This document shows positions 21,253-53,869 of a stretch of 64,000 nucleotides of DNA, one piece after another (the first letter of the stretch is position 1; each line of letters starts with the position of its first letter). The stretch covers positions 62,001-126,000 of IMG/VR virus record IMGVR_UViG_3300027759_000045. The stretch is one strand, 5' to 3'. A program made the translations under genes and the position numbers. A model generated the notes under the pieces. It was not told where the DNA came from. It worked only from the letters and a program-made list of their open reading frames with translations, and did no database searches.

Positions 21253-22083
21253 TTGAAAAAAGAATTTGCACCAGATCCAGTATTTCACTCGGATACTAAA
21301 AAGAAGTTTATACCAGACCGCCTGGACCACAATGCCACAGAGCCATCCCCAATTACCACAGCAACTGAAATTATGTCAGACAAAGATTACCAAGAAGGTT
21401 ACCTAGGCGATGCCATTCGCTTTAAGATGAAACGTGACAACAAACGTTTCTGGGCAGGCGATAATATCAGTGACTACCTGCACGAAGGTGATCGAGAACG
21501 ACTAATTGACGAAGCCTCAGAAGCATTTGAGACAGTGCTGGATCGGTTGTTGATCGATCGTGAAACAGATCCCAACTCAAAAGGCACAGCAAGACGTTTG
21601 GCCAAAATGTACTTTAATGAAATAATGGCAGGAAGATATGAACCAGAACCAGATGCAACCGCTTTCCCTAATGACTCAGCGGATCGATATGAAGGAATGC
21701 TTGTGGTGCGTAGTGAGCTTCGCAGTATGTGCAGTCATCACCACCAACCTGTCAGTGGCGTTGCTTATATCGGGATTATTGCCGCTCAAAAGCTCATTGG
21801 CCTTAGCAAGTACACTCGTATTGCTCAGTGGTGTGCTCGTCGTGGCACACTACAAGAAGAACTTGCTAATGACATTGCCCGCGAGATAATGCGGGCCACA
21901 GATGCCACAGACGTTGGTGTGTATATTCAAGCAGTGCATGGATGTTGCGAGAATCGCGGCATCATGGCACATAGTAGCCTCACACAGACCACAGTGCTTA
22001 AAGGTGCGTTTAACACAGATCAAAGTACAAAGAAAGAATTCTTTGACAATATCAAACTACAACAGGACTTTGCTCCACGATGA
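21253..22083 (+). CDS. folE: GTP cyclohydrolase I
   Basis: [30 protein letters not shown]; TTG start after GGAG. Confidence 0.95.
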
Positions 22084-24305: not shown

Positions 24306-24725
24306 ATGAGTTTACCGCACACAAAAGAAATCATTCCGGGAATCGGCCCAGAGATTAATAAACAACTTGCACCGTGGACTGAACTGGTTCGAGAGGACTT
24401 TCATGTTCAAGTATTTGAAGATATCTATCCTGTGACTCCGGGACACTTGTTATTCGTACCTAAATACAACACAGTAGGTGTGCTGATGGATGCTGTACAA
24501 GATGCAATCTATCACGGGCAGGCGCAGGTCGAATCGGGTGCCTGGGATGGATTTAACATTGGATTAAACTATGGTTCGGCAGCCGGGCAGACAGTGCCTT
24601 GGCCACATGTACACTTGATTCCTCGTCTGACAGGTGATGTTGCTGACCCTATTGGCGGTGTCCGAAATACAATTCCCGGGCAAGGTAACTATCGCACAGG
24701 TAGTTATAAACACCCCAATGCGTAA
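24306..24725 (+). CDS. HIT family nucleotide hydrolase
   Basis: DIYPVTPGHLLFVP...GFNIGLN.G.AAGQTVPWPHVHLIPR. Confidence 0.9.
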   Translation: MSLPHTKEIIPGIGPEINKQLAPWTELVREDFHVQVFEDIYPVTPGHLLFVPKYNTVGVLMDAVQDAIYHGQAQVESGAWDGFNIGLNYGSAAGQTVPWPHVHLIPRLTGDVADPIGGVRNTIPGQGNYRTGSYKHPNA

Positions 24726-24800
24726 TACAATAAATATTTCTTTACAACATCAAACTTCAACAAGAATTTGATCCTCAATGGGTTATTAAGAAAATAATAA

Positions 24801-25652
24801 ATGGACTATACAATACATCAAAACGGCTGGACAGTTATGTTGGGTGATCAGTTCAGCTTCAAGACTGCCACCCAAGACAACATCAACGAAATAGCACGCC
24901 TGCTTGCATCAAACACCTTGGTAGTTGCCAAAAAACAAAACTTGACAGTTCAAGAAGAGTTGCGTGTTATCAACATGTTCAAGGATCCTGAGGCCGCGCC
25001 TGAACAGTTGCCAATGGCTCGACGATTATGTGTTCCTGACACACAAGGCAAGATAGTTAGAGTAACTGGCGAACTTGATGAACACGGAGAACCTGGACTG
25101 TTTGGTCATGTCAGCGATCTTGATTGGCACTGTAACAAACCAGCTGTGCCCGATCGCAGACCAATTGTGTGGCTGTATGGAGTAAAAGGCACAGCTGGTT
25201 CCAGAACGTCATGGAACAACAACATACTGTCTTACCAAGATCTTGAACAAGACACTAAAAATCTGTTGGATCCGTTGGAGGGAATATTTGGATACGAAAA
25301 CGGGCGCTATACTGACATGCAATTTGAGAATGTTCCAACAAAAAGTATCAACACCCACTACACTCCAAAAATTGTTACCACAAATATTGCAGGCAAGAAA
25401 GGGCTGTTTTTTCCTTTCTTGCAGTTGTTCTATTTCAAAGGAATGAGCGAGGAAGATAGTATCAAGATTATTGATCCAATCAGCCAACATATTACACAGG
25501 ATAAGTACTGTTATCATCATGACTGGGATGATGGAGACGTTGTGATTGCCGAGCAAGTGCTAGGCATACACAAAAGATGGGCGTTTGACGGTATGCCGAA
25601 CAGGGTACTACATCGAGCTACCATGCAATTCCCAGATCAAATATATCAGTGA
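24801..25652 (+). CDS. TauD/TfdA-like 2OG-Fe(II) dioxygenase
   Basis: DWHCN...YHHDWDDGDVVI....IHKR...RVLHR. Confidence 0.8.
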   Translation: MDYTIHQNGWTVMLGDQFSFKTATQDNINEIARLLASNTLVVAKKQNLTVQEELRVINMFKDPEAAPEQLPMARRLCVPDTQGKIVRVTGELDEHGEPGLFGHVSDLDWHCNKPAVPDRRPIVWLYGVKGTAGSRTSWNNNILSYQDLEQDTKNLLDPLEGIFGYENGRYTDMQFENVPTKSINTHYTPKIVTTNIAGKKGLFFPFLQLFYFKGMSEEDSIKIIDPISQHITQDKYCYHHDWDDGDVVIAEQVLGIHKRWAFDGMPNRVLHRATMQFPDQIYQ

Positions 25653-25656
25653 TCTC

Positions 25657-25722
25657 AGCGGCCTGTTCGGCATCATCCCGCTTTACAAACTCTGCTGCCT
25701 ATGCTATAATTAACATAGGAGA
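25657..25722 (+). promoter_or_regulatory. candidate riboswitch-like leader of queD
   Basis: AGCGG/CCGCT stem; loop GGCA complementary to TGCC; alternative CCTATG/CATAGG hairpin sequesters the SD. Confidence 0.4.
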
Positions 25723-25727
25723 AAATA

Positions 25728-26234
25728 ATGGCACAATTTGAATCAGTACAATACAAATACACTTCTACCAAGGAGTATCACGATGCGTTTCCCTGCGCAT
25801 ATCGGCAATGGCGAGCAGACAGTCACTGTAATCTAATTCACGGTTACAGCTTCAGTATGAAGTTCTACTTTGGTACTAATGACCTAGATGTGCGTAACTG
25901 GGCCGCTGACTACGGTGGGCTTAAAGAGCTCAAGAAGACCTTGGAAGATCAATTTGATCATACATTGATTGTGGCAGCGGATGATCCTGAAATGGCCACA
26001 TATAACTTGTTGGTAGAAAAGAAAATGGCCAAGGTAGTTGTGTTACCAAAATTAGGATGTGAAGGTCTCAGTGACATGCTGTACAAGTATGTGAATGGGG
26101 TTTACGTTCCAGAAATGTGGGGACCCGGAGAGGCCACTCGTTTGTGGTGCTATCGTGTAGAAGTGCGTGAAACACAAGCCAACATGGCGTATCGTGAAGG
26201 GCATCGTGAATGGAATGAGGATCTGTTTGCGTGA
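25728..26234 (+). CDS. queD: 6-carboxy-tetrahydropterin synthase / PTPS family
   Basis: SHCNLIHGYS...DYGGLKELK..LEDQFDH...VEVRET. Confidence 0.88.
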   Translation: MAQFESVQYKYTSTKEYHDAFPCAYRQWRADSHCNLIHGYSFSMKFYFGTNDLDVRNWAADYGGLKELKKTLEDQFDHTLIVAADDPEMATYNLLVEKKMAKVVVLPKLGCEGLSDMLYKYVNGVYVPEMWGPGEATRLWCYRVEVRETQANMAYREGHREWNEDLFA

Positions 26235-26851
26235 ACTTGTTTGTAACCGGTGGCAGTTCTGGTGTTGGTCAAGCATGTGTAGAACTGTTTGATCAATACA
26301 CAATTACAGCACCAACAAGGAACGAACTAGATTTGTCTGACTTTGAAGCAATAGCTCAATTGGATTTATCTCAGTACGATATTGTTATCAACTGTGCAGG
26401 TGCCAATGTAGGTGCATTTCGGGGCTGGCAAGATAATACTTGGCAAAATCAGCAAAATCAAGTTGATGTAAACTTCACTGGTGCATTGCTGTTGGCCAAG
26501 CAATACGTTAAGCAACGTGCCACCGGACATTTCATTTATATCACCAGCAGTAACATCGATGATCCCATTGTGTATAACATATTTTACACTGCTGCCAAGG
26601 CCGCACTGCATTACAGTATGAATACAGTGAAGAAACAGTATCCCGATGTGCTCTTTACAGAAATCAGGCCTGGTAAAATACGTAGTAATATGTTAAATCA
26701 AAATTATCAAGGTGCAAAAACTCCTGATGAAATCGAAGAACTCTATGCCAAAGGGCCTGCACTGGCACCTGCAGATATTGCCGAGGCCATTGCGACTGCT
26801 ATTAAATACAAGATAGAACAAATCACAATAACTCCCCATGACAAATCGTGA
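26231..26851 (+). CDS. short-chain dehydrogenase/reductase
   Basis: VTGGSSGVG, INCAG, YTAAK. Confidence 0.9.
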   Translation: MNLFVTGGSSGVGQACVELFDQYTITAPTRNELDLSDFEAIAQLDLSQYDIVINCAGANVGAFRGWQDNTWQNQQNQVDVNFTGALLLAKQYVKQRATGHFIYITSSNIDDPIVYNIFYTAAKAALHYSMNTVKKQYPDVLFTEIRPGKIRSNMLNQNYQGAKTPDEIEELYAKGPALAPADIAEAIATAIKYKIEQITITPHDKS

Positions 26852-27659
26852 ATTTAAAATAGCTGTACTACTTCCCACGCACAAACGAACAGATGCACTG
26901 AGCCGCAGTGTGTTTAGTCTGCTGGATAATGCCCACGACTTGAGTCAAATACAATTTGTGTTTGGTATTGACAGTAACGATGAAATTGGACGTGAACATT
27001 TTGTCAATGAAATTCAACCTGTATTAGATGAACGAGATGTGACATATACCGCACTGGAGTTTGAACCTTTGGGTTACGGAGCACTCAATCGTTATTTTAA
27101 CACACTGGCTGAACATGCCAACGCTGATTGGTTGTTTGTTTGGTGTGACGACGCTATCATGTCAACCCAGGCATGGGATCAACGCATCATCGAATGCACA
27201 GGCGAGTTCAAGTTGTTAAAAGTGCATACACACAACGAGCATCCTTATAGCATATTTCCCATTATACCTGCAGAGTGGCCAGAGCTAACAGGTTATCTTA
27301 GCAAGCATCAATTGATCGATGCTGAAGTTAGTCAAATGGCCTACTTGCTGGACATAATGAAAATTATCGAAGTAGATGTCACACACGATCGTCATGATCT
27401 AACTGGTAATAATGCAGATGAAAATGCCAAAAAGAAAAAGTACTTTGAAGGCAATCCAAAAAATCCCGAAGACTTCCATAACAAGTATGTTACACACAAT
27501 CGGCTTGTGGATGTGAACAAATTGTTCAAATATATGAAGTCCAAGAATCTTGACACTAGTCATTGGGAGGCAGCGGTCGCAGGAAAAATTGATCCATGGG
27601 CACTTATGAAGGCCAATGATCCAAACAATCAAACAACACAATTTAAACTTCCAAAATGA
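26838..27659 (+). CDS. GT-A (GT2-like) glycosyltransferase
   Basis: VLLPTHKR...WLFVWCDDA. Confidence 0.8.
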   Translation: MTNREFKIAVLLPTHKRTDALSRSVFSLLDNAHDLSQIQFVFGIDSNDEIGREHFVNEIQPVLDERDVTYTALEFEPLGYGALNRYFNTLAEHANADWLFVWCDDAIMSTQAWDQRIIECTGEFKLLKVHTHNEHPYSIFPIIPAEWPELTGYLSKHQLIDAEVSQMAYLLDIMKIIEVDVTHDRHDLTGNNADENAKKKKYFEGNPKNPEDFHNKYVTHNRLVDVNKLFKYMKSKNLDTSHWEAAVAGKIDPWALMKANDPNNQTTQFKLPK

Positions 27660-31000: not shown

Positions 31001-31876
31001 ATGAAATTAAAAGTATCTGAACTATTCTATTCGGCACAAGGCGAAGGACGCTTTGTTGGTGTACCCAGTGTGTTTCTGCGCACATTCGGTTGTAACTTTA
31101 AGTGTGCTGGCTTTGGTATGCCACCGGGTGAAGTGAGTCACGAAGCCACTGACATTGCGGCCACACACACTATGATTCAACCGTTTGCAAAGTTTGAAGA
31201 CTTGCCGTTGGTCAATACTGGCTGCGACAGTTATGCCAGTTGGCATCCAGACTTTAAAGACCTAAGTCCAACTATTGATACTGACAAGTTGGTGGATCAG
31301 ATGCTGGCACGGACACCCAATCACAAGTGGATGCAAGACAACGGCAATGACGTACACTTGGTTATCACAGGCGGCGAACCCTTGCTGGGTTGGCAACGCA
31401 CATACGAAGAGTTGATCGGTAATCCTGGCATGAGTGATCTACGTAATATTACATTTGAAACCAATGGCACTCAAAAATTACAACCTAGTTTTAAAAACTT
31501 CATGCACGAGTGGAGTCGGAATCCCCCATTTGTTTCTAGAGAAGTTACATTTTCAGTCAGTGCTAAACTCAGTGCCAGTGGCGAAAAGTGGGAAGAAGCT
31601 ATCTGTCCCGACATTGTTGCAAGTTATCAAGACATTGGTACCACTTATCTTAAATTTGTTGTGGAAACAACAGAACACTTTGCAGAAGTTGAACGTGCGG
31701 TAAAAGAATTTAGAGACGGCGGCTTTACTGGTGTTGTATATGTCATGCCACAGGGCGGTGTAGTTACTCCGTATGCACAAAATCGTGTACGAGTAGCCGA
31801 CTGGGCTTGCAGTAAGGGCTATTACTATAGTCCTCGCCTACACGTTGACCTTTGGGGCAATGGGTGGGGAAAATAA
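31001..31876 (+). CDS. queE: 7-carboxy-7-deazaguanine synthase (radical SAM)
   Basis: SELFYSAQGEG..VG.PSVFLRTFGCNFKC...GCDS, ITGGEPLL, ETNGT, PRLHV. Confidence 0.9.
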   Translation: MKLKVSELFYSAQGEGRFVGVPSVFLRTFGCNFKCAGFGMPPGEVSHEATDIAATHTMIQPFAKFEDLPLVNTGCDSYASWHPDFKDLSPTIDTDKLVDQMLARTPNHKWMQDNGNDVHLVITGGEPLLGWQRTYEELIGNPGMSDLRNITFETNGTQKLQPSFKNFMHEWSRNPPFVSREVTFSVSAKLSASGEKWEEAICPDIVASYQDIGTTYLKFVVETTEHFAEVERAVKEFRDGGFTGVVYVMPQGGVVTPYAQNRVRVADWACSKGYYYSPRLHVDLWGNGWGK

Positions 31877-31886
31877 AAGGAAATTA

Positions 31887-32987
31887 ATGAGTTATCTATT
31901 TACAAGTGAAAGTGTATCCGAAGGACACCCGGATAAAATTGCAGATGCTATCAGTGATGCAGTGTTAGATTTGGTAATGTCCAAGGAAAATACTGCACTT
32001 CGCTGTGCTTGCGAAACACTTGTTACTACCAATCGTGTTGTGGTTGCTGGCGAATACAAAGGCGTCTTGCATGCCGAAGAAGTTGAATCAGCAGTACGCA
32101 GAGTTATTAAAGACGTTGGGTACGAACAGTCTGGATTTGATTGGCGTACTGTTGAAATCACCAACTTGTTACACGGACAAAGTGCAGATATTGCACTGGG
32201 CACAGACACATTTGGTGCCGGCGACCAAGGGCTGATGTTTGGGTATGCTTGCAACGAAACTGATAATCACATGCCCAGTGCTATCTACTACAGTCACAAG
32301 ATTGTGGAGCACTTGGCACAAGTACGTCGAACAGGCAAATTGCATTGGCTTGGTCCAGATGCCAAAAGCCAAGTGACATTTGAATACAATGATAACGGCT
32401 CGCCCAAGCGCATTGCCAAAGTTGTGTGTTCAACCCAGCACAGTGATGACATGTCAATTGACGTTGTTCGTGCCGCAGTAGAAGAAATTATTCGTCAAGT
32501 TTTACCGATGAAGTTTGTGGATGAGAATACTGAGTTTCATATTAACCCCACTGGTCGATTTGTTATTGGTGGTCCTGATGGTGACACAGGGCTCACTGGT
32601 CGTAAGATTATTGTTGACACTTATGGTGGGTATAGCCCTCATGGTGGCGGAGCCTTCTCAGGAAAAGATCCTACTAAAGTTGATCGAAGTGCTGCCTACT
32701 TGACACGCTGGATTGCCAAGAACATTGTGGCTAGCGGCCGAGCAGACTGGGCCACTGTGCAGATCAGTTATGCCATTGGTCTAGCACAGCCCATGAGCTT
32801 TTATGTTGAAACTGACCACAAACCGCAAAGTCGCGAATTGACCAAATGGGTGCAAGACAACGTTGACCTAACACCCCGAGGCATTATTGAACGATTTGAT
32901 CTCTTCCGTCCTATCTACAGTAGCACCACCAACTACGGACACTTTGGCAAAGACTATTTGCCATGGGAAACTGTAGATTTATTCTAA
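31887..32987 (+). CDS. metK: S-adenosylmethionine synthetase
   Basis: FTSESVSEGHPDK, GAGDQG, GGGAFSGKDPTKVDRS. Confidence 0.97.
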   Translation: MSYLFTSESVSEGHPDKIADAISDAVLDLVMSKENTALRCACETLVTTNRVVVAGEYKGVLHAEEVESAVRRVIKDVGYEQSGFDWRTVEITNLLHGQSADIALGTDTFGAGDQGLMFGYACNETDNHMPSAIYYSHKIVEHLAQVRRTGKLHWLGPDAKSQVTFEYNDNGSPKRIAKVVCSTQHSDDMSIDVVRAAVEEIIRQVLPMKFVDENTEFHINPTGRFVIGGPDGDTGLTGRKIIVDTYGGYSPHGGGAFSGKDPTKVDRSAAYLTRWIAKNIVASGRADWATVQISYAIGLAQPMSFYVETDHKPQSRELTKWVQDNVDLTPRGIIERFDLFRPIYSSTTNYGHFGKDYLPWETVDLF

Positions 32988-40804: not shown

Positions 40805-40879
40805 GCACAGGTGGCGGAATGATTACGCAACGGATTGCAAATCCGTATCATGCAGGTTTGAGTCCTGTCCTGTGTTCCA
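40805..40879 (+). tRNA. tRNA-Cys(GCA)
   Basis: cloverleaf; ACGGA-TTGCAAA-TCCGT; U73; encoded CCA. Confidence 0.92.
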
Positions 40880-40898
40880 ATTTTTACAAAGTAAAGAT

Positions 40899-41660
40899 AT
40901 GAAATTATTTGCCACTGTGTTTTTTTGTGCAGTTTTATCCAATGTGTCAGCTCGCACCAGTGAGCCCACAGTGTTGGTCTACAACATTAATGCACAGCGC
41001 ACAGAACAGAGTCAACACGCCGATCAAGTCAGATCTATGGCCAGTGTGACCAAATTGATGACTGCTATGGTTGCATTGGATCACAACAGAAATCTACAAC
41101 AGACGGTGATGCTGGGGAAACACACCGGTAGTCGATTGCCGCCTGGTCTATACACTAGAGAACAGTTGTTGCTGGCCATGCTGGTCAGCAGTGACAACGG
41201 TGCAGCCGAGGCCATTGCACAGGACTATCCCGGAGGTCGATCTGCGTTTGTGGCTGAGATGAATCGACATGCTAAAATGTGGAATCTTGGAGATACTAAG
41301 TTTGTAGATCCTTCGGGTCTGGGTGTGTTCAATGTGTCCACTGCGCAGGACCTGGCAGAGATGGTACAGATTGCTGCCAGCTATTGGTTTATACAAGAAG
41401 CCAGCGGGCAGTCTACTGTACAATTGAAAAAGCCGGATCGAACTCGTGGCAACACTGTGAATCTTATTCACACATCCCGTCAACTGTTAGCAGAATTTGA
41501 CCGTGTGGTTGTGAGCAAGACTGGATTTACCAATCCCGCCGGTTGGTGTGTGGCCATGCTGGTGGAACGGAACAAACAACAGTATGTGGTCATTGTGTTG
41601 GGTGCCAGTACTAAACTGGATCGCAGTGAGATTATAAAGAAAGCGTTTAAAAATTTGTGA
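40899..41660 (+). CDS. peptidase S11 (D-Ala-D-Ala carboxy/endopeptidase, PbpG-like), secreted
   Basis: signal peptide; SxxK (ASVTK), SDN, KTG; start moved past tRNA-Cys. Confidence 0.9.
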   Translation: MKLFATVFFCAVLSNVSARTSEPTVLVYNINAQRTEQSQHADQVRSMASVTKLMTAMVALDHNRNLQQTVMLGKHTGSRLPPGLYTREQLLLAMLVSSDNGAAEAIAQDYPGGRSAFVAEMNRHAKMWNLGDTKFVDPSGLGVFNVSTAQDLAEMVQIAASYWFIQEASGQSTVQLKKPDRTRGNTVNLIHTSRQLLAEFDRVVVSKTGFTNPAGWCVAMLVERNKQQYVVIVLGASTKLDRSEIIKKAFKNL

Positions 41661-41693
41661 TACTAGCACTGTATTACATTCAAAGGAGTGGCC

Positions 41694-42293
41694 ATGTCAA
41701 AAGTATTTTATCTCAACTTACCTCAACTTCCAGACAAAATTTATAATAAATTAGTCGAAATTTGTTATTCAACTGTGCTAAATGAACAATCTCGTCTTTG
41801 GACACATGATTTTCATCGTGGCGAGTTGGTGGTTGCCACAATCGATGGTGGAATAGTTGTACCAGATGATTTGTTGGTAAAAGAGTTAGACCTACTTTAC
41901 AAAGATTATTTTCCCGGCCAAGAACTTCTTTTCACTACTTCTAGAATCAGCAATGTGGTTGGACAAAAAAGTATATTGCCACCGCACTGTGATCGCAAAA
42001 GAAAACTGGCCATCAACTATGTTTTAAAAACTGGTGGGTCACAAGTTTCGACTTGTTTTTACAAAGAACGTAGATCTACTCCAACACTCGACACTGCTGA
42101 GAATAGATATTACAAGGATCTCACTGTTGACTTTCTTGAGGTAATTCCTGAAAAAACTTGGCACTGTTTTGATGTTCAAACTTTTCACAGTGTCAACGAT
42201 ATAGAGACAGATAGATTTTTCTTTTCAATAATTTTAAAAACAACCAACCCTTCAATAGAAGAATTTTCTTTGAAGTACAAGAATTTAATGTAG
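41694..42293 (+). CDS. 2OG-Fe(II) oxygenase-like protein
   Basis: LPPHCD...FHSV....R. Confidence 0.6.
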   Translation: MSKVFYLNLPQLPDKIYNKLVEICYSTVLNEQSRLWTHDFHRGELVVATIDGGIVVPDDLLVKELDLLYKDYFPGQELLFTTSRISNVVGQKSILPPHCDRKRKLAINYVLKTGGSQVSTCFYKERRSTPTLDTAENRYYKDLTVDFLEVIPEKTWHCFDVQTFHSVNDIETDRFFFSIILKTTNPSIEEFSLKYKNLM

Positions 42294-42322
42294 GTGTGGG
42301 TCGAGTCCTGTCACCTATTCCA
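42291..42322 (+). pseudogene. tRNA 3'-half remnant / minihelix ending TCCA
   Basis: TAGGTG/CACCTA stem, GGGTCGAGTCC T-loop-like sequence, CCA. Confidence 0.45.
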
Positions 42323-42328
42323 ATTTCA

Positions 42329-42420
42329 GGAAGATGATGCAGCGGGGTTGGTCCTGCGACTGGCCTTGAAAACCAGGTTCTCTTAACAGGGATGGGGTTC
42401 GACTCCTCCGTCTTCCGCCA
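42329..42420 (+). tRNA. tRNA-Ser(TGA), 8/4 fold
   Basis: 8-bp acceptor GGAAGATG/CGTCTTCC, 4-bp T stem, long variable arm, G73, loop CTTGAAA. Confidence 0.85.
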
Positions 42421-42424
42421 ACAA

Positions 42425-42514
42425 GGTGTGGTCCTATAATGGTATTAGAGCAGATTGCTAATCTGTCGCTCGGCGTAATCCGAGTTCTGAGTTCGAGTCT
42501 CAGTCACACCGCCA
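42425..42514 (+). tRNA. tRNA-Ser(GCT)
   Basis: GCAGA-TTGCTAA-TCTGT, long variable arm, G73. Confidence 0.92.
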
Positions 42515-42519
42515 ACATT

Positions 42520-42595
42520 GCCGACGTAGCTCATCAGGTAGAGCACCAGACTGAAAATCTGGGTGTGACTGGTTCGAGTCCAGTCGTTGGTACCA
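42520..42595 (+). tRNA. tRNA-Phe(GAA)
   Basis: CCAGA-CTGAAAA-TCTGG. Confidence 0.93.
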
Positions 42596-42599
42596 ATCT

Positions 42600-42674
42600 G
42601 GGTCTTTGGTGAAATGGATATCATGCTTGGCTTCGAACCAAGTGGTGTGGGTTCGATTCCTGCAGGACCCGCCA
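42600..42674 (+). tRNA. tRNA-Arg(TCG)
   Basis: CTTGG-CTTCGAA-CCAAG. Confidence 0.92.
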
Positions 42675-42678
42675 ACAC

Positions 42679-42752
42679 AGCCCGTTAGCTCAATGGTAGA
42701 GCACTCGACTGATAATCGAGCGACAGAGGATCGTTACCTCTACAGGCTACCA
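42679..42752 (+). tRNA. tRNA-Ile(GAT), non-canonical T loop
   Basis: CTCGA-CTGATAA-TCGAG; T arm AGAGG-ATCGTTA-CCTCT. Confidence 0.88.
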
Positions 42753-42775
42753 ACAATTTTTACAGAGTAGAATTA

Positions 42776-43318
42776 ATGAAAGATTTAATATTAATCGCAT
42801 TGAAAGAAGAAGCACCCAACATAGCTTTCAGTATGAAAGTTTTTTTCACTGGGGTAGGAAAAGTAAATGCCGCAATGACTACAGCTGAAATGATTGCTAA
42901 GTACCGCCCCGATCGTATTATCAACTTTGGTACAGCTGGTGGAGTCACTGTTAAGTCAGGATTTCACCAAGTGACCAAGTTTATACAACGTGACATGATG
43001 TGCTGTGAGTTGGGTAGTCTGCCAGGTCAAACACCATTCGAAGATGGTGTTGTTTTAGATTTTGGCAAGGGGTTGACCTGCAGTACAGGTGATAACTTTG
43101 TTACTGATAGTAATCTATTGATACCAGCCGACGTAGTGGATATGGAAGCATACGCTATAGCAAAGGCATGTAAAAAACATAACGTAGAATTTTTATGTTA
43201 CAAGTTTGTTAGTGATGGTGCTAATGAAGATTCATTAAATGATTGGCGCACAACTGTTAGTCAAGGGCAACTTCACTATCTAAATAAACTTAAAGAATTA
43301 AATGTATCTCTGGTGTAA
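42776..43318 (+). CDS. mtnN: 5'-methylthioadenosine/SAH nucleosidase
   Basis: ALKEE, TGVGKVNAA, NFGTAGG, STGDNF, VDMEAYAIAKAC, KFVSD. Confidence 0.9.
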   Translation: MKDLILIALKEEAPNIAFSMKVFFTGVGKVNAAMTTAEMIAKYRPDRIINFGTAGGVTVKSGFHQVTKFIQRDMMCCELGSLPGQTPFEDGVVLDFGKGLTCSTGDNFVTDSNLLIPADVVDMEAYAIAKACKKHNVEFLCYKFVSDGANEDSLNDWRTTVSQGQLHYLNKLKELNVSLV

Positions 43319-43377
43319 TGGCAGCACCGCGGTCTCCAAAACCGTCAGTCAAGGTTCGAGTCCTTGGAGGTACGCCA
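43304..43377 (+). tRNA. tRNA-Trp(CCA)
   Basis: GCGGT-CTCCAAA-ACCGT; 5' end overlaps the mtnN stop. Confidence 0.9.
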
Positions 43378-43382
43378 GTTTA

Positions 43383-43456
43383 GCTCTTATAGTATAATGG
43401 CATTACATGCCCTTGGTAAGGGTAAAACACAAGTTCAATTCTTGTTAAGAGCACCA
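43383..43456 (+). tRNA. tRNA-Thr(GGT)
   Basis: TGCCC-TTGGTAA-GGGTA. Confidence 0.88.
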
Positions 43457-43460
43457 AATA

Positions 43461-43579
43461 ACCCTACAGTGAGCAGGGTATACTAAAGTACTAAGTTGAC
43501 CATTTAATGCCGTTTTGCTATAATAGAAACAAGTTAAGAAATTAGCTGGATCTGCAAATAACCCTACACAGTGTAGGGT
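43461..43579. repeat. two 19-bp palindromic sites 100 bp apart
   Basis: ACCCTACAGTGAGCAGGGT (43461-79) and perfect ACCCTACAC-A-GTGTAGGGT (43561-79), both preceded by AAATA. Confidence 0.75.
43496..43524 (+). promoter_or_regulatory. sigma70 promoter (first of tandem pair)
   Basis: TTGACC-N17-TATAAT. Confidence 0.85.
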
Positions 43580-43593
43580 GTTTGCAAAACAAA

Positions 43594-43622
43594 TTGACTA
43601 GATATAGCCATTGTGTTATACT
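43594..43622 (+). promoter_or_regulatory. sigma70 promoter (second of tandem pair)
   Basis: TTGACT-N17-TATACT. Confidence 0.8.
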
Positions 43623-43627
43623 AGAGA

Positions 43628-43661
43628 CTAGTTAGGAAATTAACTAGACGTTCTTTAAAAA
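43628..43661 (+). promoter_or_regulatory. boxB-like hairpin plus boxA-like antitermination signal
   Basis: CTAGTTA-GGAAAT-TAACTAG then CGTTCTTTAAAAA. Confidence 0.6.
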
Positions 43662-43691
43662 GTTATTGTTTTTGGTAACCCGCAAGGGTTG

Positions 43692-43906
43692 CTATTTTAA
43701 AATGTATTAAAGGTTACCTACACCGTTAGGGATCTAAGGCGAGGACAGTGGGGCCGCCCACGCTCAAGCTAGGTCTATGAAACCGGGCAGAAATGTCCAG
43801 AAAAGCGGCGGAGCATGTAGGCAGTAATGACCGTGCAGGCCTATAGCAGACGGTGCTATAGGTAGACATAGATGCACAATGGTTCCTTTAGTATGTTTTA
43901 AAATAG
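43692..43906 (+). ncRNA. unidentified ~215-nt multibranched RNA
   Basis: 22-bp closing stem with three G-U pairs and at least five internal helices. Confidence 0.65.
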
Positions 43907-43913
43907 TAGAATT

Positions 43914-43989
43914 TGGTCTGTTCGTATAGAGGTTATTACTGTGGATTGTCTATCCACTTACGGGGGTTCGATTCCCCCACAGACCGCCA
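43914..43989 (+). tRNA. tRNA-Asp(GTC)
   Basis: GTGGA-TTGTCTA-TCCAC; G73. Confidence 0.92.
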
Positions 43990-43995
43990 AGTTTT

Positions 43996-44060
43996 GAGAG
44001 TCACATCGCCTGGACACTTCCTTTGGTAACGAAGCACTAGGTCCTGCAACCGTGGCTCTC
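43996..44060 (+). ncRNA. 65-nt rod-like structured element
   Basis: GAGAGTCAC/GTGGCTCTC, CCTGG/CTAGG, CTTC/GAAG nested. Confidence 0.4.
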
Positions 44061-44068
44061 CCCTTTTT

Positions 44069-44143
44069 GCTCGATTCGTCTATCGGTTAGGACATCTGGT
44101 TTTCATCCAGGCAAGAGCGGTTCGATTCCGCTATCGAGTACCA
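44069..44143 (+). tRNA. tRNA-Glu(TTC)
   Basis: TCTGG-TTTTCAT-CCAGG. Confidence 0.92.
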
Positions 44144-44144
44144 A

Positions 44145-44343
44145 ATCCCGTTACTATTTTCGTTAAAATAGCGTTTGATTAGCGATAGAGATCCGGTGGC
44201 AGAAGACCGTAAGTGTAGGGCTGGAAACTACCCCTCGGAATCTGATAGGCAGTATCCTTCTGCACACAGACATTAGAATAAAAAGGATGGACAGAGTAAC
44301 CGCTCAATTAAGGGCTGGCATGGAAACCAGTAGCTTATCCTAA
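44145..44343 (+). ncRNA. unidentified structured RNA domain A
   Basis: no ORF; CTATTTT/AAAATAG, GCAGAAG/CTTCTGC, CTGG/CCAG, GGAT/ATCC. Confidence 0.55.
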
Positions 44344-44346
44344 CAT

Positions 44347-44431
44347 GGAGATGCCGCCGTAATGGTATGGCAGGAGACTGTAAATCTTCCGACTTCGGTC
44401 ACAACAGGTTCGATCCCTGTCATCTCCACCA
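44347..44431 (+). tRNA. tRNA-Tyr(GTA)
   Basis: GGAGA-CTGTAAA-TCTTC, long variable arm. Confidence 0.92.
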
Positions 44432-44432
44432 G

Positions 44433-44630
44433 AACCCGCCGGGGTAACGCCTGGCTAGTATGACCCGTACGAGAGAAGTGAGTTCGTTACTCAAGGGTGG
44501 TAGTCTTCTTACCAAAAGGCCGCTGGCAATGCGATAACGGTTCCTGTCGGGAAGCGGGTGGAAGGTACGAGTGAGGGGTATGATAGCGTCATATCTTTCT
44601 GTACTATAATTACCGCCGGGGGATGCAGAG
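44433..44630 (+). ncRNA. unidentified pseudoknotted RNA domain B
   Basis: GC-rich non-coding stretch, at least five hairpins, and a long-range GGTGGTAGT(44496-504)/ATTACCGCC(44609-17) pairing. Confidence 0.6.
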
Positions 44631-44635
44631 CATTT

Positions 44636-44711
44636 GGGGGATTGGTATACTTGGCTAACACACCTGGTTTGCAACCAGGAGCAAACGGTTCGAATCCGTT
44701 ATCCTCCACCA
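44636..44711 (+). tRNA. tRNA-Ala(TGC)
   Basis: CCTGG-TTTGCAA-CCAGG; G3-U70. Confidence 0.92.
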
Positions 44712-44730
44712 TTTTATAAAAGGAAATTGT

Positions 44731-44874
44731 ATGAAACGTAAACCGATCGTGCGCGAACGTAACTGCTTCGTTCGTCTGGCACTGTTCCGCAAAGCAGGTG
44801 CGCATCGCAAGAGCAACAAGGCTCTGCGTCGAGCACAAAAACAAAGCCCATTAGGGGGTGAAACTTTAAGGTGA
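44731..44874 (+). CDS. small very basic protein, 47 aa (MKRKPIVRERN...FRKAGAHRKSNKALRR...)
   Basis: AAGGA RBS; 3' end overlaps tRNA-Lys. Confidence 0.55.
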   Translation: MKRKPIVRERNCFVRLALFRKAGAHRKSNKALRRAQKQSPLGGETLR

Positions 44875-44927
44875 AGTAACGGACTTTTAATCCGTAAAAC
44901 AGGGATCGTTCCCCTGCACCCCTACCA
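44854..44927 (+). tRNA. tRNA-Lys(TTT), non-canonical T loop
   Basis: ACGGA-CTTTTAA-TCCGT; T arm CAGGG-ATCGTTC-CCCTG. Confidence 0.87.
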
Positions 44928-45020
44928 TATAAAAGCACTCTAAACTGGACGCAGGTTCTGTGAAGTAACACCTCGGATTGATCGCCGAGAAGGTATGGAG
45001 AATAAGAGTGTTTCTATATG
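44926..45020 (+). other. long stem (15/16 bp) enclosing ~63 nt
   Basis: CATATAAAAGCACTCT / AGAGTGTTTCTATATG. Confidence 0.55.
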
Positions 45021-45048
45021 GTAAGAATACCAGTCAATAAATAATGTT

Positions 45049-45783
45049 ATGAAAATTAAACTACCTCAAGAATTGCACTGGTTCTGCCCAGTGGCAGCAC
45101 CTGACCTAATTAGATTAGGTGGAAAAATGGATGGTGGCTACATTGTGCCACGTTCAGCAGTGGAACAAGCACAGGGCCTGCTGAGTTTTGGACTGGGTGA
45201 CGATTTTACATTTGACCAAGACTGGCATGATCTCAAGCCCCAGGATCCAATTCAGATGTATGACGCCAGTGTTACCAGAGATACCATGCGTATCAGCATC
45301 AATACGCCGGTTCGCGGACATCTGGACATTCGAACCATGTACGATGAATTCTTTCAGGGCAATGTAAAACATTGGCCAGAGTTTATTGGTCCTGAGAACT
45401 TTGTTCGAGCCCTGGACAGAATGGGCGTGGATCAAGTGTTTATTAAAATGGATATCGAAGGTGGCGAATACAGTTTGATTGAAAGTATTTTACAACATCG
45501 AGATCGTATCGTGGGTGTCGCAATGGAATGGCATAACTGTGCAAATCGTAGCGAGCAATGGCGCCGAGCTGTGCAACGCTGGCAAGAGCACTATGCTATA
45601 GTACATGTACACGGAAATAACCATGTGGGATTTGATTCAGATGGTGTGTTTGGATGTATGGAACTGACACACATTCGCCGAGACTTGGTTCCTGGAAATG
45701 AACTGCGTAAAGAGTCTTACATACACGGTTTAGATTATTCTAACGTGGCTGGTCTTACTGATATTGAATACTATTTTGATTAA
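45049..45783 (+). CDS. FkbM-like methyltransferase
   Basis: LIRLGGKMDGGY, LSFGLGDD, FIKMDIEGGEY, HVHGNN. Confidence 0.75.
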   Translation: MKIKLPQELHWFCPVAAPDLIRLGGKMDGGYIVPRSAVEQAQGLLSFGLGDDFTFDQDWHDLKPQDPIQMYDASVTRDTMRISINTPVRGHLDIRTMYDEFFQGNVKHWPEFIGPENFVRALDRMGVDQVFIKMDIEGGEYSLIESILQHRDRIVGVAMEWHNCANRSEQWRRAVQRWQEHYAIVHVHGNNHVGFDSDGVFGCMELTHIRRDLVPGNELRKESYIHGLDYSNVAGLTDIEYYFD

Positions 45784-45786
45784 TTT

Positions 45787-45862
45787 GGTGATGTAGCTTA
45801 GACGGTAGAGCAATTGCTTCATACGCATTAGGTCGGTGGTTCGATACCACCCATCACCACCA
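45787..45862 (+). tRNA. tRNA(CAT), elongator Met or Ile2
   Basis: loop TTCATAC; paired 1:72, so not initiator; identity unresolved. Confidence 0.8.
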
Positions 45863-45872
45863 AACAAATAAT

Positions 45873-45948
45873 GCGGCTGTAGCTCAGTTGGTAGAGTACT
45901 TGCTTGCCAAGCAAGACGTCACCGGTTCGAACCCGGTTAGCCGCTCCA
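45873..45948 (+). tRNA. tRNA-Gly(GCC)
   Basis: CTTGC-TTGCCAA-GCAAG; U73. Confidence 0.94.
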
Positions 45949-45959
45949 ACATTTATTAC

Positions 45960-46033
45960 TGGGGGTTAGTGTAGCGGTAACACTACAGACTTTGACTCTG
46001 TCATCACTGGTTCGATCCCAGTACCCTCTGCCA
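45960..46033 (+). tRNA. tRNA-Gln(TTG)
   Basis: ACAGA-CTTTGAC-TCTGT; unpaired 1:72, G73. Confidence 0.92.
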
Positions 46034-46057
46034 TCTCTGCCCTTATCTTGGGTGGTA

Positions 46058-46867
46058 TCAAAGATTCTGTTGGGTTGATCCAATAATAATGCTGTTGGGT
46101 TGATCCAACAGCAGATCAACAACCAAATGCACACGTTGGGTTGTTCCTTGATTTTGAACTTGATGCCACGTTAAATTGTTAAGTCTGTACAGCCAACCTA
46201 AAGACATGTGTTCTTGACTGTCAGATTTTCCAGTAAAAGTTACTTGACGGTTGGTTTGCAGTGGTATGTGAAATCTACAATAGTGTTCAAAATAACGACC
46301 TCCGTCGATATGTAGCAGAACACTACCACCTGGCTGCATGCAGTTTAAAACACTGGTACCAATGGCCTTGGCATTCATTTTTTGTTGTGTCCAGTGTAAA
46401 AGTTTAGTCACACCGGGCAGTCGCACTTGCCATTCAGTGTCTACTGAGTCAAGATTTTTGTAATAATCCTTCAACTCAGTTATATTATCATTCGATGCGT
46501 GAGTGCGCAGAAAAATTGATTGGGTTTTATTTACAAAATTCTGTTGGACTGGTGAAGTAGTGTCAGTGACACTATCATGATGTTTAGCTAGGTAAGTTTG
46601 GATATATAAATCTGGTTGTGTCTGCGCCCAATCTATGTTGTCTATTTCGGCTATAGCCGCATTCAGTATAGATTCGGGTACCTGGCTGATTGCATGCGCT
46701 AACAACGGTGGGCGGGCAGCCTGCTTGAAACTGCCTGGTACATAACTATGCACGGTCTCGCATTCCTGACGTATGAAATCAGGTAGAAGTGGATAAGAAT
46801 CTTCGGTGGCACAGTCAGGCCATGCAGGATCTCTTACTGCTTGATAAAATTGATGCCAGTCATTCAT
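46058..46867 (-). CDS. Asp/Asn beta-hydroxylase-like 2OG-Fe(II) oxygenase
   Basis: PGGSVLLHIDGG...RFHIPL...WHQVQNQG...RVHLVVD; TAAATA upstream. Confidence 0.8.
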   Translation of the reverse strand: MNDWHQFYQAVRDPAWPDCATEDSYPLLPDFIRQECETVHSYVPGSFKQAARPPLLAHAISQVPESILNAAIAEIDNIDWAQTQPDLYIQTYLAKHHDSVTDTTSPVQQNFVNKTQSIFLRTHASNDNITELKDYYKNLDSVDTEWQVRLPGVTKLLHWTQQKMNAKAIGTSVLNCMQPGGSVLLHIDGGRYFEHYCRFHIPLQTNRQVTFTGKSDSQEHMSLGWLYRLNNLTWHQVQNQGTTQRVHLVVDLLLDQPNSIIIGSTQQNL

Positions 46868-46892
46868 GATCTGATATTTACCAATTAATGTT

Positions 46893-46968
46893 AGGGGACA
46901 TAAATTAACGGCCAACGCAACTGGCTTTTGCCCAGTAAATCAGAGTTCAATTTTTGTACCCTCTGCTA
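46893..46968 (+). pseudogene. degenerate tRNA, Gln-like body
   Basis: ACTGG-CTTTTGC-CCAGT arm; 3' GTACCCTCTGCTA nearly identical to the tRNA-Gln end; broken D and T arms, no CCA. Confidence 0.6.
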
Positions 46969-46970
46969 TT

Positions 46971-47045
46971 CTCGCTTTAGTATAATGGATAATACAAAGA
47001 GCTTCTACCTCTTGAATGTGGGTTCGATTCCTGCAAGCGAGACCA
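46971..47045 (+). tRNA. tRNA-Arg(TCT)
   Basis: AAGAG-CTTCTAC-CTCTT. Confidence 0.92.
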
Positions 47046-47050
47046 AACAT

Positions 47051-47126
47051 GGAGTTGTTAGTGTAAAGGTCAACACCACGGATTGTGATTCCGTTAATAC
47101 GGGTTCGATTCCCGTACGACTCCCCA
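47051..47126 (+). tRNA. tRNA-His(GTG)
   Basis: ACGGA-TTGTGAT-TCCGT; encoded G-1:C73. Confidence 0.92.
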
Positions 47127-47130
47127 AACG

Positions 47131-47319
47131 TTATTGATAATCTTCTTTAAAAGACTTGATCCAACTGACCGCAGAGTCATGATCACTAAAGTAACGCATA
47201 ATTAGCCGATCATTGAAAATATCATTGACAAAAATGTAAGATGTGTTATACTCACTAAGTGACAGGTGCACTTGCAAATGTCCACTGGTTGAAATAAAAT
47301 CTTGTGTTTGCGTCTGCAT
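47131..47319 (-). CDS. hypothetical protein, 62 aa
   Basis: minus-strand TATAAATA 5 nt before the ATG. Confidence 0.6.
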   Translation of the reverse strand: MQTQTQDFISTSGHLQVHLSLSEYNTSYIFVNDIFNDRLIMRYFSDHDSAVSWIKSFKEDYQ

Positions 47320-47376
47320 GCACATATTTATACCTCAATCCTGTACCAATAAATACCCCACACAACAAGGAAACAA

Positions 47377-47532
47377 ATGAAAACCACATCAGCATTTAAA
47401 CTCAGCAAAAGAACAAAAACATTATTGGCATTGCTAAAGTTTAGAGATCAACATGATCGTAATGGATTTAAAAGAGCCATGGTTGACGCACAAGCAACCC
47501 CAGTGGCATTTTCGCCCAAAGACCGCAAGTAA
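47377..47532 (+). CDS. small basic protein, 51 aa (MKTTSAFKLSKRTK...KDRK)
   Basis: TAAATA plus AAGGA RBS. Confidence 0.65.
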   Translation: MKTTSAFKLSKRTKTLLALLKFRDQHDRNGFKRAMVDAQATPVAFSPKDRK

Positions 47533-47538
47533 GATTAT

Positions 47539-47614
47539 TCCCCAATAGCTCAGTCGGTAGAGTAGCAGACTGTTAATCTGTTGGTCCGTGGTTCGAGCCC
47601 ACGTTGGGGAGCCA
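47539..47614 (+). tRNA. tRNA-Asn(GTT)
   Basis: GCAGA-CTGTTAA-TCTGT. Confidence 0.94.
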
Positions 47615-47621
47615 ATTAAAA

Positions 47622-47706
47622 GGGGATGTGGCGTAATTGGTAGCCGCACTGGATTTAGGTTCCAGCGAGTAAAATCGTGAGAGTTCGAGTCTCTCCATCC
47701 CCACCA
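47622..47706 (+). tRNA. tRNA-Leu(TAG)
   Basis: CTGGA-TTTAGGT-TCCAG, long variable arm. Confidence 0.92.
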
Positions 47707-47718
47707 AGGTAAACTATT

Positions 47719-48219
47719 ATGGAAAAAATCAATCTCGCCAAGGTAAAAAAGTTCATTGAGGCGCAGACACCCGAAACTCGAATTTATCTCGGCTGTGACT
47801 CTGAGCGCCTTAGAGTAAACGGGGTCTGGCATGCCGACTATGTGTTGGCTGTTGTGGTTCACATCAACGGCAACAACGGTTGCAAACTATTTGGCGAAGT
47901 ACAGCGTGAGCGAGACTTTGATCAAAAAACTTCTCGTCCCAGTATGCGATTGATGAATGAAGTTTACAAAGTATCCGAACTGTACCTAAAGCTGGGCGAA
48001 GTGCTAGAAGGCCGTCATGTTGAAGTGCATTTGGATATTAACCCAGATGATCAGTACGGTTCTAGCTGTGTGATATCACAGGCAGTGGGCTATATCAAAG
48101 GCACTTGCAATGTGACACCATCAGTTAAACCCAATGCGTTTGCTGCCAGCTATGCTGCCGATCGTTTTAAAGGATTATCAACTGCATGTCATCGTGCCAG
48201 AATCAACGAAAGATTCTAA
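47719..48219 (+). CDS. RNase H-like YkuK/DUF458 family protein
   Basis: IYLGCDS...RLMNEVYK...EVHLDIN...VKPNAFAASYAAD. Confidence 0.8.
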   Translation: MEKINLAKVKKFIEAQTPETRIYLGCDSERLRVNGVWHADYVLAVVVHINGNNGCKLFGEVQRERDFDQKTSRPSMRLMNEVYKVSELYLKLGEVLEGRHVEVHLDINPDDQYGSSCVISQAVGYIKGTCNVTPSVKPNAFAASYAADRFKGLSTACHRARINERF

Positions 48220-48226
48220 AAAGTTG

Positions 48227-48254
48227 TTGACTTTTAATTTTTTTCTGTTATAAT
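48227..48254 (+). promoter_or_regulatory. sigma70 promoter, extended -10
   Basis: TTGACT-N16-TATAAT with TGn. Confidence 0.75.
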
Positions 48255-48264
48255 TACAACTGTA

Positions 48265-48354
48265 GGAAGCGTGTCCGAGTGGCCGATGGAACTGGTCTAC
48301 TAAACCAGCATACGAGTAATCGTATCGTGAGTTCGAATCTCACCGCTTCCGCCA
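48265..48354 (+). tRNA. tRNA-Ser(ACT), rare A34 anticodon
   Basis: CTGGT-CTACTAA-ACCAG; Ser-type long variable arm and G73. Confidence 0.85.
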
Positions 48355-48360
48355 AGTTAC

Positions 48361-48435
48361 CGCGGGGTACGTCAGTGGTAGACCGCCAGGCTCATAACCT
48401 GGAAGCCGGAGGTTCGAGTCCTTCCCCCGCAACCA
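48361..48435 (+). tRNA. initiator tRNA-fMet(CAT)
   Basis: C1:A72 mismatch, CGCGGGG acceptor, loop CTCATAA. Confidence 0.88.
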
Positions 48436-48453
48436 TTTGTTTTAGGAAGCATT

Positions 48454-48840
48454 ATGAACTCTAATCCTGAGCGCAAGAACAATTTAGAATACGACTTGCG
48501 GAATACCAAGTGGATCTGCGACAAGGCCAAGGCCAGCGAATTTTACGCACAAAATCTGTATGCTGCCATGTGCAATCAAGACTGGCAAAAAAATGAAGTT
48601 TGGCCGTTGCTCAAAAGCGAAACATACAGTTGCAGTTGGCGCTATGCCGGTGGCATTGTGGCCGACATGGTCGAAAAGGGTGACTATATCGATTGGTACT
48701 GCTCAGGTATTCGTGGAGAACAAGGCATCGATTACGAGCCTCCTCTAACTTTTGTGCCCGAAGGTACAGTCACAGAAGAAATACGCGAAGACTTTTTTAA
48801 ATTAGGATGGATTCCTATTGATCAAGTAGACGATGAATAA
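48454..48840 (+). CDS. hypothetical protein, 128 aa
   Basis: ORF with AGGA RBS. Confidence 0.8.
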   Translation: MNSNPERKNNLEYDLRNTKWICDKAKASEFYAQNLYAAMCNQDWQKNEVWPLLKSETYSCSWRYAGGIVADMVEKGDYIDWYCSGIRGEQGIDYEPPLTFVPEGTVTEEIREDFFKLGWIPIDQVDDE

Positions 48841-48849
48841 ATAAGTGTT

Positions 48850-49270: not shown

Positions 49271-49275
49271 TTTTT
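49238..49275 (+). terminator. hairpin plus U-tract at the tmRNA 3' end
   Basis: GGTAATTTA/TAAATTACC then TTTTT. Confidence 0.6.
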
Positions 49276-49299
49276 ATTCAATAACAAAAATCCACCGGC

Positions 49300-50589: not shown

Positions 50590-50701
50590 GTACACCCCAC
50601 CTTTTTGGTGTGTTTCTTCATTGAAAAAGCCGGGGATCATGTACCGTGACTAAGTATTATTCTAGCCGATGAAAGTCGGCTTTAATTTAAAGGAAAATAA
50701 A

Positions 50702-51244: not shown

Positions 51245-51265
51245 TTTAATTAATGCTTGCCACAA

Positions 51266-51288
51266 ACCCGCTTCGGCGGGTTTTCTTT
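51266..51288 (+). terminator. intrinsic terminator
   Basis: ACCCGC-TTCG-GCGGGT then TTTCTTT. Confidence 0.9.
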
Positions 51289-51345
51289 ATTAATTTTTCC
51301 TATTGCTGTCATTAAGATATAGTTGACAAAAATTCAACAATGTTG

Positions 51346-51374
51346 TTGACTTCGTGGATATATACTAGTATACT
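51346..51374 (+). promoter_or_regulatory. sigma70 promoter
   Basis: TTGACT-N17-TATACT. Confidence 0.75.
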
Positions 51375-53859: not shown

Positions 53860-53869
53860 ACATTTCTGG

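Follow-up and report, generated by a model that had tools for sequence, protein, structure and literature searches.

Is the short leader in front of a jumbo phage's queD gene a riboswitch-like RNA, as the pairings in its sequence suggest, or do these pairings merely coincide with other signals? The leader lies in a 64,000-nt stretch of DNA (hereafter, the window) corresponding to bases 62001-126000 of the 346,856-bp virus record IMGVR_UViG_3300027759_000045, which has direct terminal repeats. The DNA polymerase encoded by this record is closest to those of Sinorhizobium phage Phosso (51%), Agrobacterium phage Atu_ph07 (47%) and the E. coli 121Q group (42%), which places it among the T4-related jumbo phages. 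An earlier note, made from the sequence alone, had described in the 75-nt gap between a TauD-family ORF and a PTPS/QueD-family ORF a P1 helix, a loop able to pair with a tail after an A-rich linker, and a competing hairpin that hides the Shine-Dalgarno (SD) sequence, and had inferred a variant sensor for a pathway metabolite or a protein-bound operator. All of the motifs in this description were found where the note had placed them (Table 1), and the observation is therefore confirmed. The interpretation is partly supported: the pseudoknot, its competition with the SD-hiding hairpin and its failure to match preQ1-I all hold, while binding of a metabolite remains an inference and a protein-bound operator remains possible. 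The note did not recognize a sigma-70 promoter on the same bases, nor that the element in this genome is not at an mRNA 5' end.

Table 1. Features of the queD leader and its surroundings, in window coordinates.
Position	Strand	Feature	Sequence	Remarks
21253-22083		FolE		
24640-24745		End of a HIT-family gene, followed by the late-type motif	ends in ...TTTCTTTAC	Aligns with the DNA immediately 5' of P1 in two related loci (L037 and L006); homology breaks at 24745
24731-24737	+	Late-type (T4-late-like) promoter motif; promoter activity inferred	ATAAATA	In relatives it lies 5-8 nt before P1
about 24746-25656		Inserted segment carrying the TauD-family ORF		
24801-25652	+	TauD/TfdA-family dioxygenase ORF		Pfam PF02668, E = 1.2e-20
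25657-25661	+	P1 5' arm	AGCGG	Pairs with 25678-25682
25662-25668	+	L1	CCTGTTC	
25669-25672	+	P2 5' strand, inside the P1 loop	GGCA	Pairs with 25696-25699
25673-25677	+	L2	TCATC	Ends in C25677, directly before the P1 3' arm
25678-25682	+	P1 3' arm	CCGCT	
25682-25710	+	Internal sigma-70-type promoter	TTTACA (25682-25687), 17-nt spacer, TGc-TATAAT (25702-25710)	Predicted start at about 25716-25718
25683-25695	+	L3 linker	TTACAAACTCTGC	13 nt
25696-25699	+	P2 3' strand	TGCC	Last two C's are also the first two bases of the SD-hiding hairpin
25698-25719	+	Sequestor hairpin	CCTATG (25698-25703) / CATAGG (25714-25719)	Pairs the AGG of the SD sequence
25717-25721	+	SD sequence	AGGAG	6 nt before the ATG
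25728-26234	+	QueD-like (PTPS family) gene, the regulated gene in our interpretation		ATG at 25728; 168 aa; Pfam PTPS, E = 7.9e-15
31001-31876		Radical-SAM ORF resembling QueE		

Taken by itself, the window sequence was unremarkable. Its minimum free energy (MFE) was -18.5 kcal/mol (z = -1.54), and 12 of 200 shuffles folded as well, so the single-sequence argument was dropped in favor of comparison. A consensus scan, on the other hand, showed that the linker and the hairpin loop are overlaid by a near-consensus sigma-70 promoter that matches 11 of 12 positions and has an extended -10. The genome holds 63 sites at 11/12 or better, 55 of them on the gene strand and mostly just before start codons, and many members of this set share a CATAG near the start. 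At that point a plain promoter appeared to account for the whole region.

To distinguish these possibilities, we compared the leader with those of related phages, covariation among which had been named beforehand as the check on the proposal. A scan of IMG/VR guided by the QueD-like protein returned at least 594 relatives, of which 80 were fetched, and their leaders were found to be conserved and to change in a paired way. Further loci were collected with DNA patterns on the linker and with two other QueD subfamilies. Among about 570 fetched loci with the motif, at least 271 distinct aptamer sequences were counted, effectively one per locus, although loci from different scans can be the same contig. 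The common element consists of a 5-bp P1, an L1 that starts with N-C-U-U and varies in length (about 4-9 nt), the P2 5' strand, an L2 of U-C-A-Y-C, the P1 3' arm, a linker with the consensus W-U-A-Y-A-A-A-Y-U-C-U-G-C, and the P2 3' strand. In a MAFFT alignment of 130 distinct sequences (A1), T17 and C21 of L2 and A29, A31, A33, T35, C36 and G38 of the linker were invariant. Over a set of 191 distinct aptamers, the last base of L2 was C in 100% and the linker was 13 nt in 191 of 191, but part of this set was selected with TCAYCCC, and part of the loop and linker conservation in general was imposed by the DNA patterns used to fetch loci.

Covariation of P1 was tested on sites selected without reference to the 5' arm, using only L2, a 3' arm different from CCGCT, and the linker. 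Of 162 distinct sites, 158 had the exactly complementary 5' arm 10-26 nt upstream, where about 1.5% is expected by chance: CCGCA with TGCGG in 88 of 88, CCGGT with ACCGG in 67 of 70, CCGGA with TCCGG in 2 of 2, and CCGAT with ATCGG in 1 of 1. AGAGG/CCTCT, AGTGG/CCACT and AGTCG/CGACT were also seen in addition to the AGCGG/CCGCT of the window, and a 4-bp AAGG/CCTT form was accompanied by a linker shortened to 10 nt. RNAalifold predicted P1 independently.

The loop-to-tail helix P2 covaries through at least 10 pair combinations. In A1, the four core P2 pairs formed a standard pair in 84% of cells, against 50.9 +/- 1.8% in shuffles, and the covariation score was 0.738 against 0.242 +/- 0.019, while sliding the partner by 1-3 columns gave at most 0.158. 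P1 and P2 together reached 90% paired, which 0 of 500 shuffles matched. Some rows are out of register, which counts against the structure, and part of the count of pairs with both sides changed reflects a one-pair extension of the helix (GGCA/UGCC against GGCAU/AUGCC) rather than substitutions. In addition, many of the sequences are closely related, so the shuffle statistics overstate independence and are not probabilities. An alignment-free test, in which each loop was paired with its own tail or a permuted one, gave 3.79 against 3.36 +/- 0.08, with 0 of 500 permutations reaching the observed value. The clearest evidence is the table of classes: GGCA/UGCC, GGCG/CGCC, GGCU/AGCC, GGUG/CACC (3 of 3), GGGC/GUCC or GCCC (10 of 10), GACA/UGUC, GACGU/AUGUC and GACGC/GUGUC, with AUGC/GCAU, AACG/CGUU and GCAA/UUGC in the other subfamilies. 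Wobble intermediates also occur; for example, GGUG/CGCC, with a U-G wobble, lies between GGCG/CGCC and GGUG/CACC. The proposed check thus came out strongly positive.

The element is tightly associated with one gene. Of 278 distinct sites chosen by DNA motif alone, 274 were followed by a QueD-like ORF, at a median of 35 nt after the linker, and these ORFs come from four divergent subfamilies. In sets chosen by protein, nearly every leader carried the motif: by our reading, all 78 leaders with upstream sequence in the window's own subfamily, one of them with a terminal P1 mismatch, while for the other two subfamilies a strict pattern found 52 of 66 and 49 of 55, with most of the rest being variants by inspection. 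Among 282 distinct upstream segments, 106 (38%) had a sigma-70 promoter whose -10 ends 6-10 nt before P1 (7 nt in 80 of them), 130 had a TAARTA motif ending 3-13 nt before P1, and 46, including the window, had neither. NTAAATA is about 17-fold enriched in the intergenic DNA of this genome and, by analogy with T4 late promoters, is probably a late promoter. In most leaders (236 of 282) the RNA would therefore begin at or next to P1, as inferred from sequence. In the window, the TauD-family gene is an insertion between the late-type motif and P1 that was found at this place in no other locus, so that the pseudoknot here is intercistronic but intact.

While the sensor is constant, the expression platform takes at least three forms. 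In group 1, to which the window belongs, the sequestor hairpin is part of the MFE fold and covers the AGG of the SD sequence; its stem covaries to CCUAUA/UAUAGG (loci L125 and L173) and CUCUAUU/AAUAGAG (locus L153). In groups 2 and 3, a longer helix forms between the P2 3' strand plus following bases and the GAUGGCA start region, and in several of these leaders the P2 5' strand in the loop (for example AUGGCAU) nearly copies the start site. In every type the P2 3' strand is shared between the pseudoknot and the sequestor. In knot-free MFE folds, at least one of its four bases paired with the SD-to-AUG region in 119 of 130 leaders. Imposing the knot lowered the paired fraction of the SD from 0.70 to 0.35, but AUG pairing rose from 0.65 to 0.82, so the predicted gain in start-codon accessibility is not consistent, and the folds cannot model pseudoknots.

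The internal promoter is probably real as well. In 76 distinct group-1 leaders, the loop of the sequestor hairpin starts with a hexamer kept as T 97%, A 97%, variable, A 93%, A 95%, T 97%, located 17-18 nt after TTTACA or TATACA, whereas the rest of the loop varies in length and sequence. Across 310 distinct leaders, an internal sigma-70 promoter (9/12 or better) was found in 3 of 110 that already have one upstream of P1 and in 154 of 200 that do not (Fisher p = 2e-41, inflated by relatedness). Each queD therefore appears to keep one sigma-70 promoter, either before the switch or inside it. Transcripts from the internal promoter of the window would lack both the sensor and the 5' arm of the sequestor. 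Its sequence fits the sigma-70 early promoters of T4-like phages, but it is embedded in a structured RNA element, with its -10 in the loop of the sequestor hairpin and its -35 over the P1/L3 junction.

We next asked whether the element belongs to a known family. Rfam 15 gave no match to the site at E <= 10, either in the window or in ten variant loci, with only chance hits elsewhere; at gathering thresholds, the window showed only tRNAs and a permuted tmRNA, which together with the polymerase kinship hints at alpha-proteobacterial-type hosts. A dedicated search of the whole genome with the preQ1-I model (RF00522; threshold 39 bits) gave only weak hits away from the site. The architecture nonetheless resembles preQ1-I as described (PMC10622847): a minimal H-type pseudoknot of about 35-45 nt with a P1 of 5-6 bp, a P2 between the P1 loop and the 3' tail, a cytidine at the end of L2 where preQ1-I has its specificity cytidine, a linker that starts A-rich, and a location directly upstream of a queuosine/7-deazaguanine pathway gene with inferred action on the ribosome-binding site. 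However, two of the three ligand-contact positions of preQ1-I are not conserved: the first L1 base is A 17%, C 34% and U 48% rather than a conserved U, and the base before the P2 3' strand is C (99%), preceded by UCUG, rather than A. L1 is also longer, L3 is 13 nt and ends in a conserved CUCUGC instead of running A-rich into P2, the SD is not part of P2, and the inferred polarity is ON. Other pseudoknot riboswitches (SAM-II/SAM-V, fluoride, guanidine-III, NAD+-II, preQ1-II/III) likewise couple a small pseudoknot aptamer to SD accessibility, but none of their Rfam models matched and their conserved loop and linker sequences are different. A pattern scan of one representative genome for each of about 185,000 prokaryotic species gave 16 hits, roughly the number expected by chance; fifteen have no P1 and no queD, and the only real one (L219) is on a 5.9-kb contig, probably phage, binned with a Bacteroidetes MAG. 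Megablast of the region against cultured phages found nothing, and the cultured relatives with a QueD-like gene, Acidovorax phage ACP17, Dinoroseobacter phage R5C and Sinorhizobium phage Phosso, have no such leader. Full-text literature searches found no description of the element. The genome has a single copy, and apparent second sites in other loci were false positives of a loose pattern, except for one decayed copy in locus L086.

Taken together, a structured cis-regulatory RNA is very likely. The best single reading, held with moderate confidence, is that the leader encodes a roughly 43-nt H-type pseudoknot that is the conserved sensor domain of a cis-acting translational switch for QueD, the second enzyme of 7-deazapurine synthesis, in a large clade of uncultured jumbo phages related to Atu_ph07, Phosso and 121Q. 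Because the pseudoknot and the ribosome-site sequestor exclude each other, whatever stabilizes the pseudoknot should open the ribosome site, which is ON logic. The most likely stabilizer is a small molecule, which would make this a new riboswitch class resembling preQ1-I in architecture but not in sequence; candidates, by conjecture, are guanine-like pathway compounds, namely CDG, preQ0/preQ1, 7-deazaguanine, a pterin intermediate, or GTP/guanine. In this view, early host-polymerase transcripts from the internal promoter would skip the switch, and only longer ones, here probably from the late-type promoter upstream of the inserted TauD gene, would be subject to it. What the analysis establishes is the structure and its conservation, the gene association, the absence from Rfam and the conservation of the promoter sequence, whereas transcript starts, promoter activity and timing, ON polarity, and ligand binding with its effect on expression are inferred from sequence. 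ON logic is unusual for a biosynthetic gene, and in the window the internal promoter would bypass an element that is intercistronic, both of which count against this reading. A fuller version is more tentative and somewhat less likely than not: a phage-only class sensing a guanine-like 7-deazapurine or pterin pathway compound, with the loop acting as a decoy of the start site, and wired into the early/late transcription program by an early promoter placed either before or inside the switch.

The main rival, unlikely but not excluded, is that the same pseudoknot binds a phage or host protein, or a small RNA, as a translational operator like the 5' pseudoknot of the T4 gene 32 mRNA. Covariation shows structure and not ligand type, these phages belong to a T4-related polymerase group, T4 uses protein translational repressors, and the motif is confined to one phage clade and absent from bacteria in the genomes scanned. 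The gene 32 knot is also an H-type pseudoknot at the 5' end of a phage mRNA leader, upstream of the ribosome site, but it nucleates binding of its own single-strand-binding product, whereas here the gene encodes an enzyme and the knot competes directly with an SD/AUG sequestor. Moreover, the invariant single-stranded bases packed around the P1/P2 junction and the fixed linker length tied to P1 length are as in small-molecule pseudoknot aptamers, the motif is tied to one enzyme gene from four divergent subfamilies rather than to a regulator gene, and there is one copy per genome where a regulon operator would be expected at several genes. A very divergent preQ1-I member that still binds preQ1, preQ0 or a close 7-deazaguanine is about equally doubtful. 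The shared architecture and the que-gene context speak for it, but the sequence differences given above, the lack of any covariance-model hit and the inferred ON polarity, where preQ1-I switches are OFF, speak against it, and the phage lacks QueF and any recognizable QueC, so it cannot make preQ0 or preQ1 itself.

A ligand-independent device, such as a 5'-end stabilizer, a thermometer or Mg2+ sensor, or a co-transcriptional folding timer setting basal QueD translation, is unlikely. The element does sit at the very 5' end of the inferred transcript in many leaders and is a small, marginally stable knot with alternative pairing to the ribosome site, but simple stabilizers and thermometers do not need invariant loop and linker bases or a strict 13-nt linker, and the window copy is fully intact although not at a 5' end. 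Least likely by far is that the region is only a promoter, plus a weak hairpin after the upstream gene, with incidental RNA pairings. The promoter match, its many counterparts in the genome, the conserved -10 and the unremarkable fold energy fit this view, but compensatory changes in P1, P2 and the sequestor stem cannot be explained by a DNA promoter, groups 2 and 3 keep the pseudoknot without any -10 at that place, and TTTACA is TATATA, TATAAA or TTAAAA in many leaders. The promoter is thus a second, overlapping feature and not an alternative explanation.

Phage riboswitches are rare, and this would be a well-populated class that appears to be specific to jumbo phages. The step it would regulate commits GTP-derived pterin to 7-deazapurines, which phages use to modify their DNA against host restriction. 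The aptamer is small enough to be easy to test and could also yield a compact new sensor part. The promoter overlap is unusual and shows how one stretch of DNA can carry a promoter and an RNA switch at once.

The genomic context fits the 7-deazapurine pathway, and the queD label is reasonable. The protein is 46% identical to QueD of Pseudomonas phage Iggy, whose DNA carries dPreQ0 (PMC10484667), and 46-53% identical to phage QueD proteins, with a shared RQWRA-SHC-HGY block; its NCBIfam QueD match is weak and below cut-off. The radical-SAM ORF that resembles QueE gave weak NCBIfam hits and E = 8e-12 against Iggy QueE. No recognizable QueC, TGT/DpdA or DUF6610 was found in the genome. Phages that stop at CDG are known (PMC10516641). 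Because these phages have FolE, QueD and a QueE-like gene but no QueC or DpdA, the ligand would also show what they make. A pterin rather than a 7-deazapurine pathway was considered because of a neighboring SDR gene and the lack of QueC, but this was weakened by the QueE-like gene and by the conserved FolE...QueD...QueE neighborhood, in which FolE lies upstream of the switch in 158 loci and the QueE-like gene downstream in 135. MetK is also present in the genome, and a 273-aa gene follows queD.

The TauD-family dioxygenase gene is an insertion between a late-type promoter and the candidate queD switch, since relatives have the promoter directly before P1 and none has TauD at this place. A stretch elsewhere in the window is weakly similar (74% over 69 nt), which suggests that the ORF in which it lies encodes a TauD paralogue. 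Two classes of promoter were identified across the whole genome. One is a near-consensus sigma-70 set comprising 63 sites that match at 11/12 positions or better, 55 of which are on the gene strand, and it includes a repeated family of the form TTGACC..AATTCCC..TTGC-TATAAT..CATAG..AAAAGGAG. The other is NTAAATA, a motif about 17-fold enriched between genes that is probably a late promoter. The phage genome was also found to contain a permuted (two-piece type) tmRNA gene, which was matched to Rfam family RF04321 with a score of 104.7 bits and is located next to 26 tRNA genes.

Positions of the additional features observed around the queD locus and elsewhere (window coordinates unless another locus is named)
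Feature	Position
Insertion carrying the TauD-family dioxygenase gene	24746-25656
Stretch weakly similar to the TauD insertion	about 58528-58596
ORF suggested to encode a TauD paralogue	57811-58707
Permuted tmRNA gene (RF04321)	48852-49219
tRNA genes (26)	spread over 40805-54353
Example sites for the two promoter classes	21183, 30966, 53870, 61059
FolE gene	21253-22083
QueD-like gene	25728-26234
QueE-like radical-SAM gene	31001-31876
MetK gene	31845-32987
273-aa ORF following queD	26838-27659
Decayed second aptamer copy	L086, 4-60

Genes for FolE, a QueD-like protein, a QueE-like radical-SAM protein and MetK are present in the genome, whereas no QueC, TGT/DpdA or DUF6610 was found. The genes of this 7-deazapurine-type pathway, as inferred from gene content, are interleaved with nucleotide-sugar genes (epimerases, DegT, C-methyltransferase, cupin, and UDP-glucose dehydrogenase-like). 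In addition, a 273-aa ORF with no Pfam or NCBIfam hit directly follows queD, or lies near it, in 60-86 related loci. Based on the sequence pattern alone, the conserved IAxLLPTRGR...DxDD signature of its product resembles a GT-A glycosyltransferase.

Only one true copy of the motif was detected in the prokaryotic genome collection. It is found on a short contig of 5860 bp (L219; JGI/GTDB contig CAIJZG010000025.1) that was binned with an uncultured Bacteroidetes MAG. This contig is therefore probably a mis-binned phage fragment, and is at best a weak hint as to the host. Variant forms of the predicted aptamer were also observed. In five leaders of the 149-aa QueD subfamily (L534, L540, L542, L545, and L552), a 4-bp P1 (AAGG/CCTT) comes with a linker shortened from 13 to 10 nt, such that P1 length and linker length change together. 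In a further locus, L588, the otherwise invariant fourth P1 pair is flipped (AGTCG/CGACT). Finally, the related locus L086 contains a decayed second copy of the aptamer (P1 ACCAG/CTGGT, linker ATACAAACTTCGC), which lies about 1 kb upstream of the intact one and is followed by an unrelated ORF.
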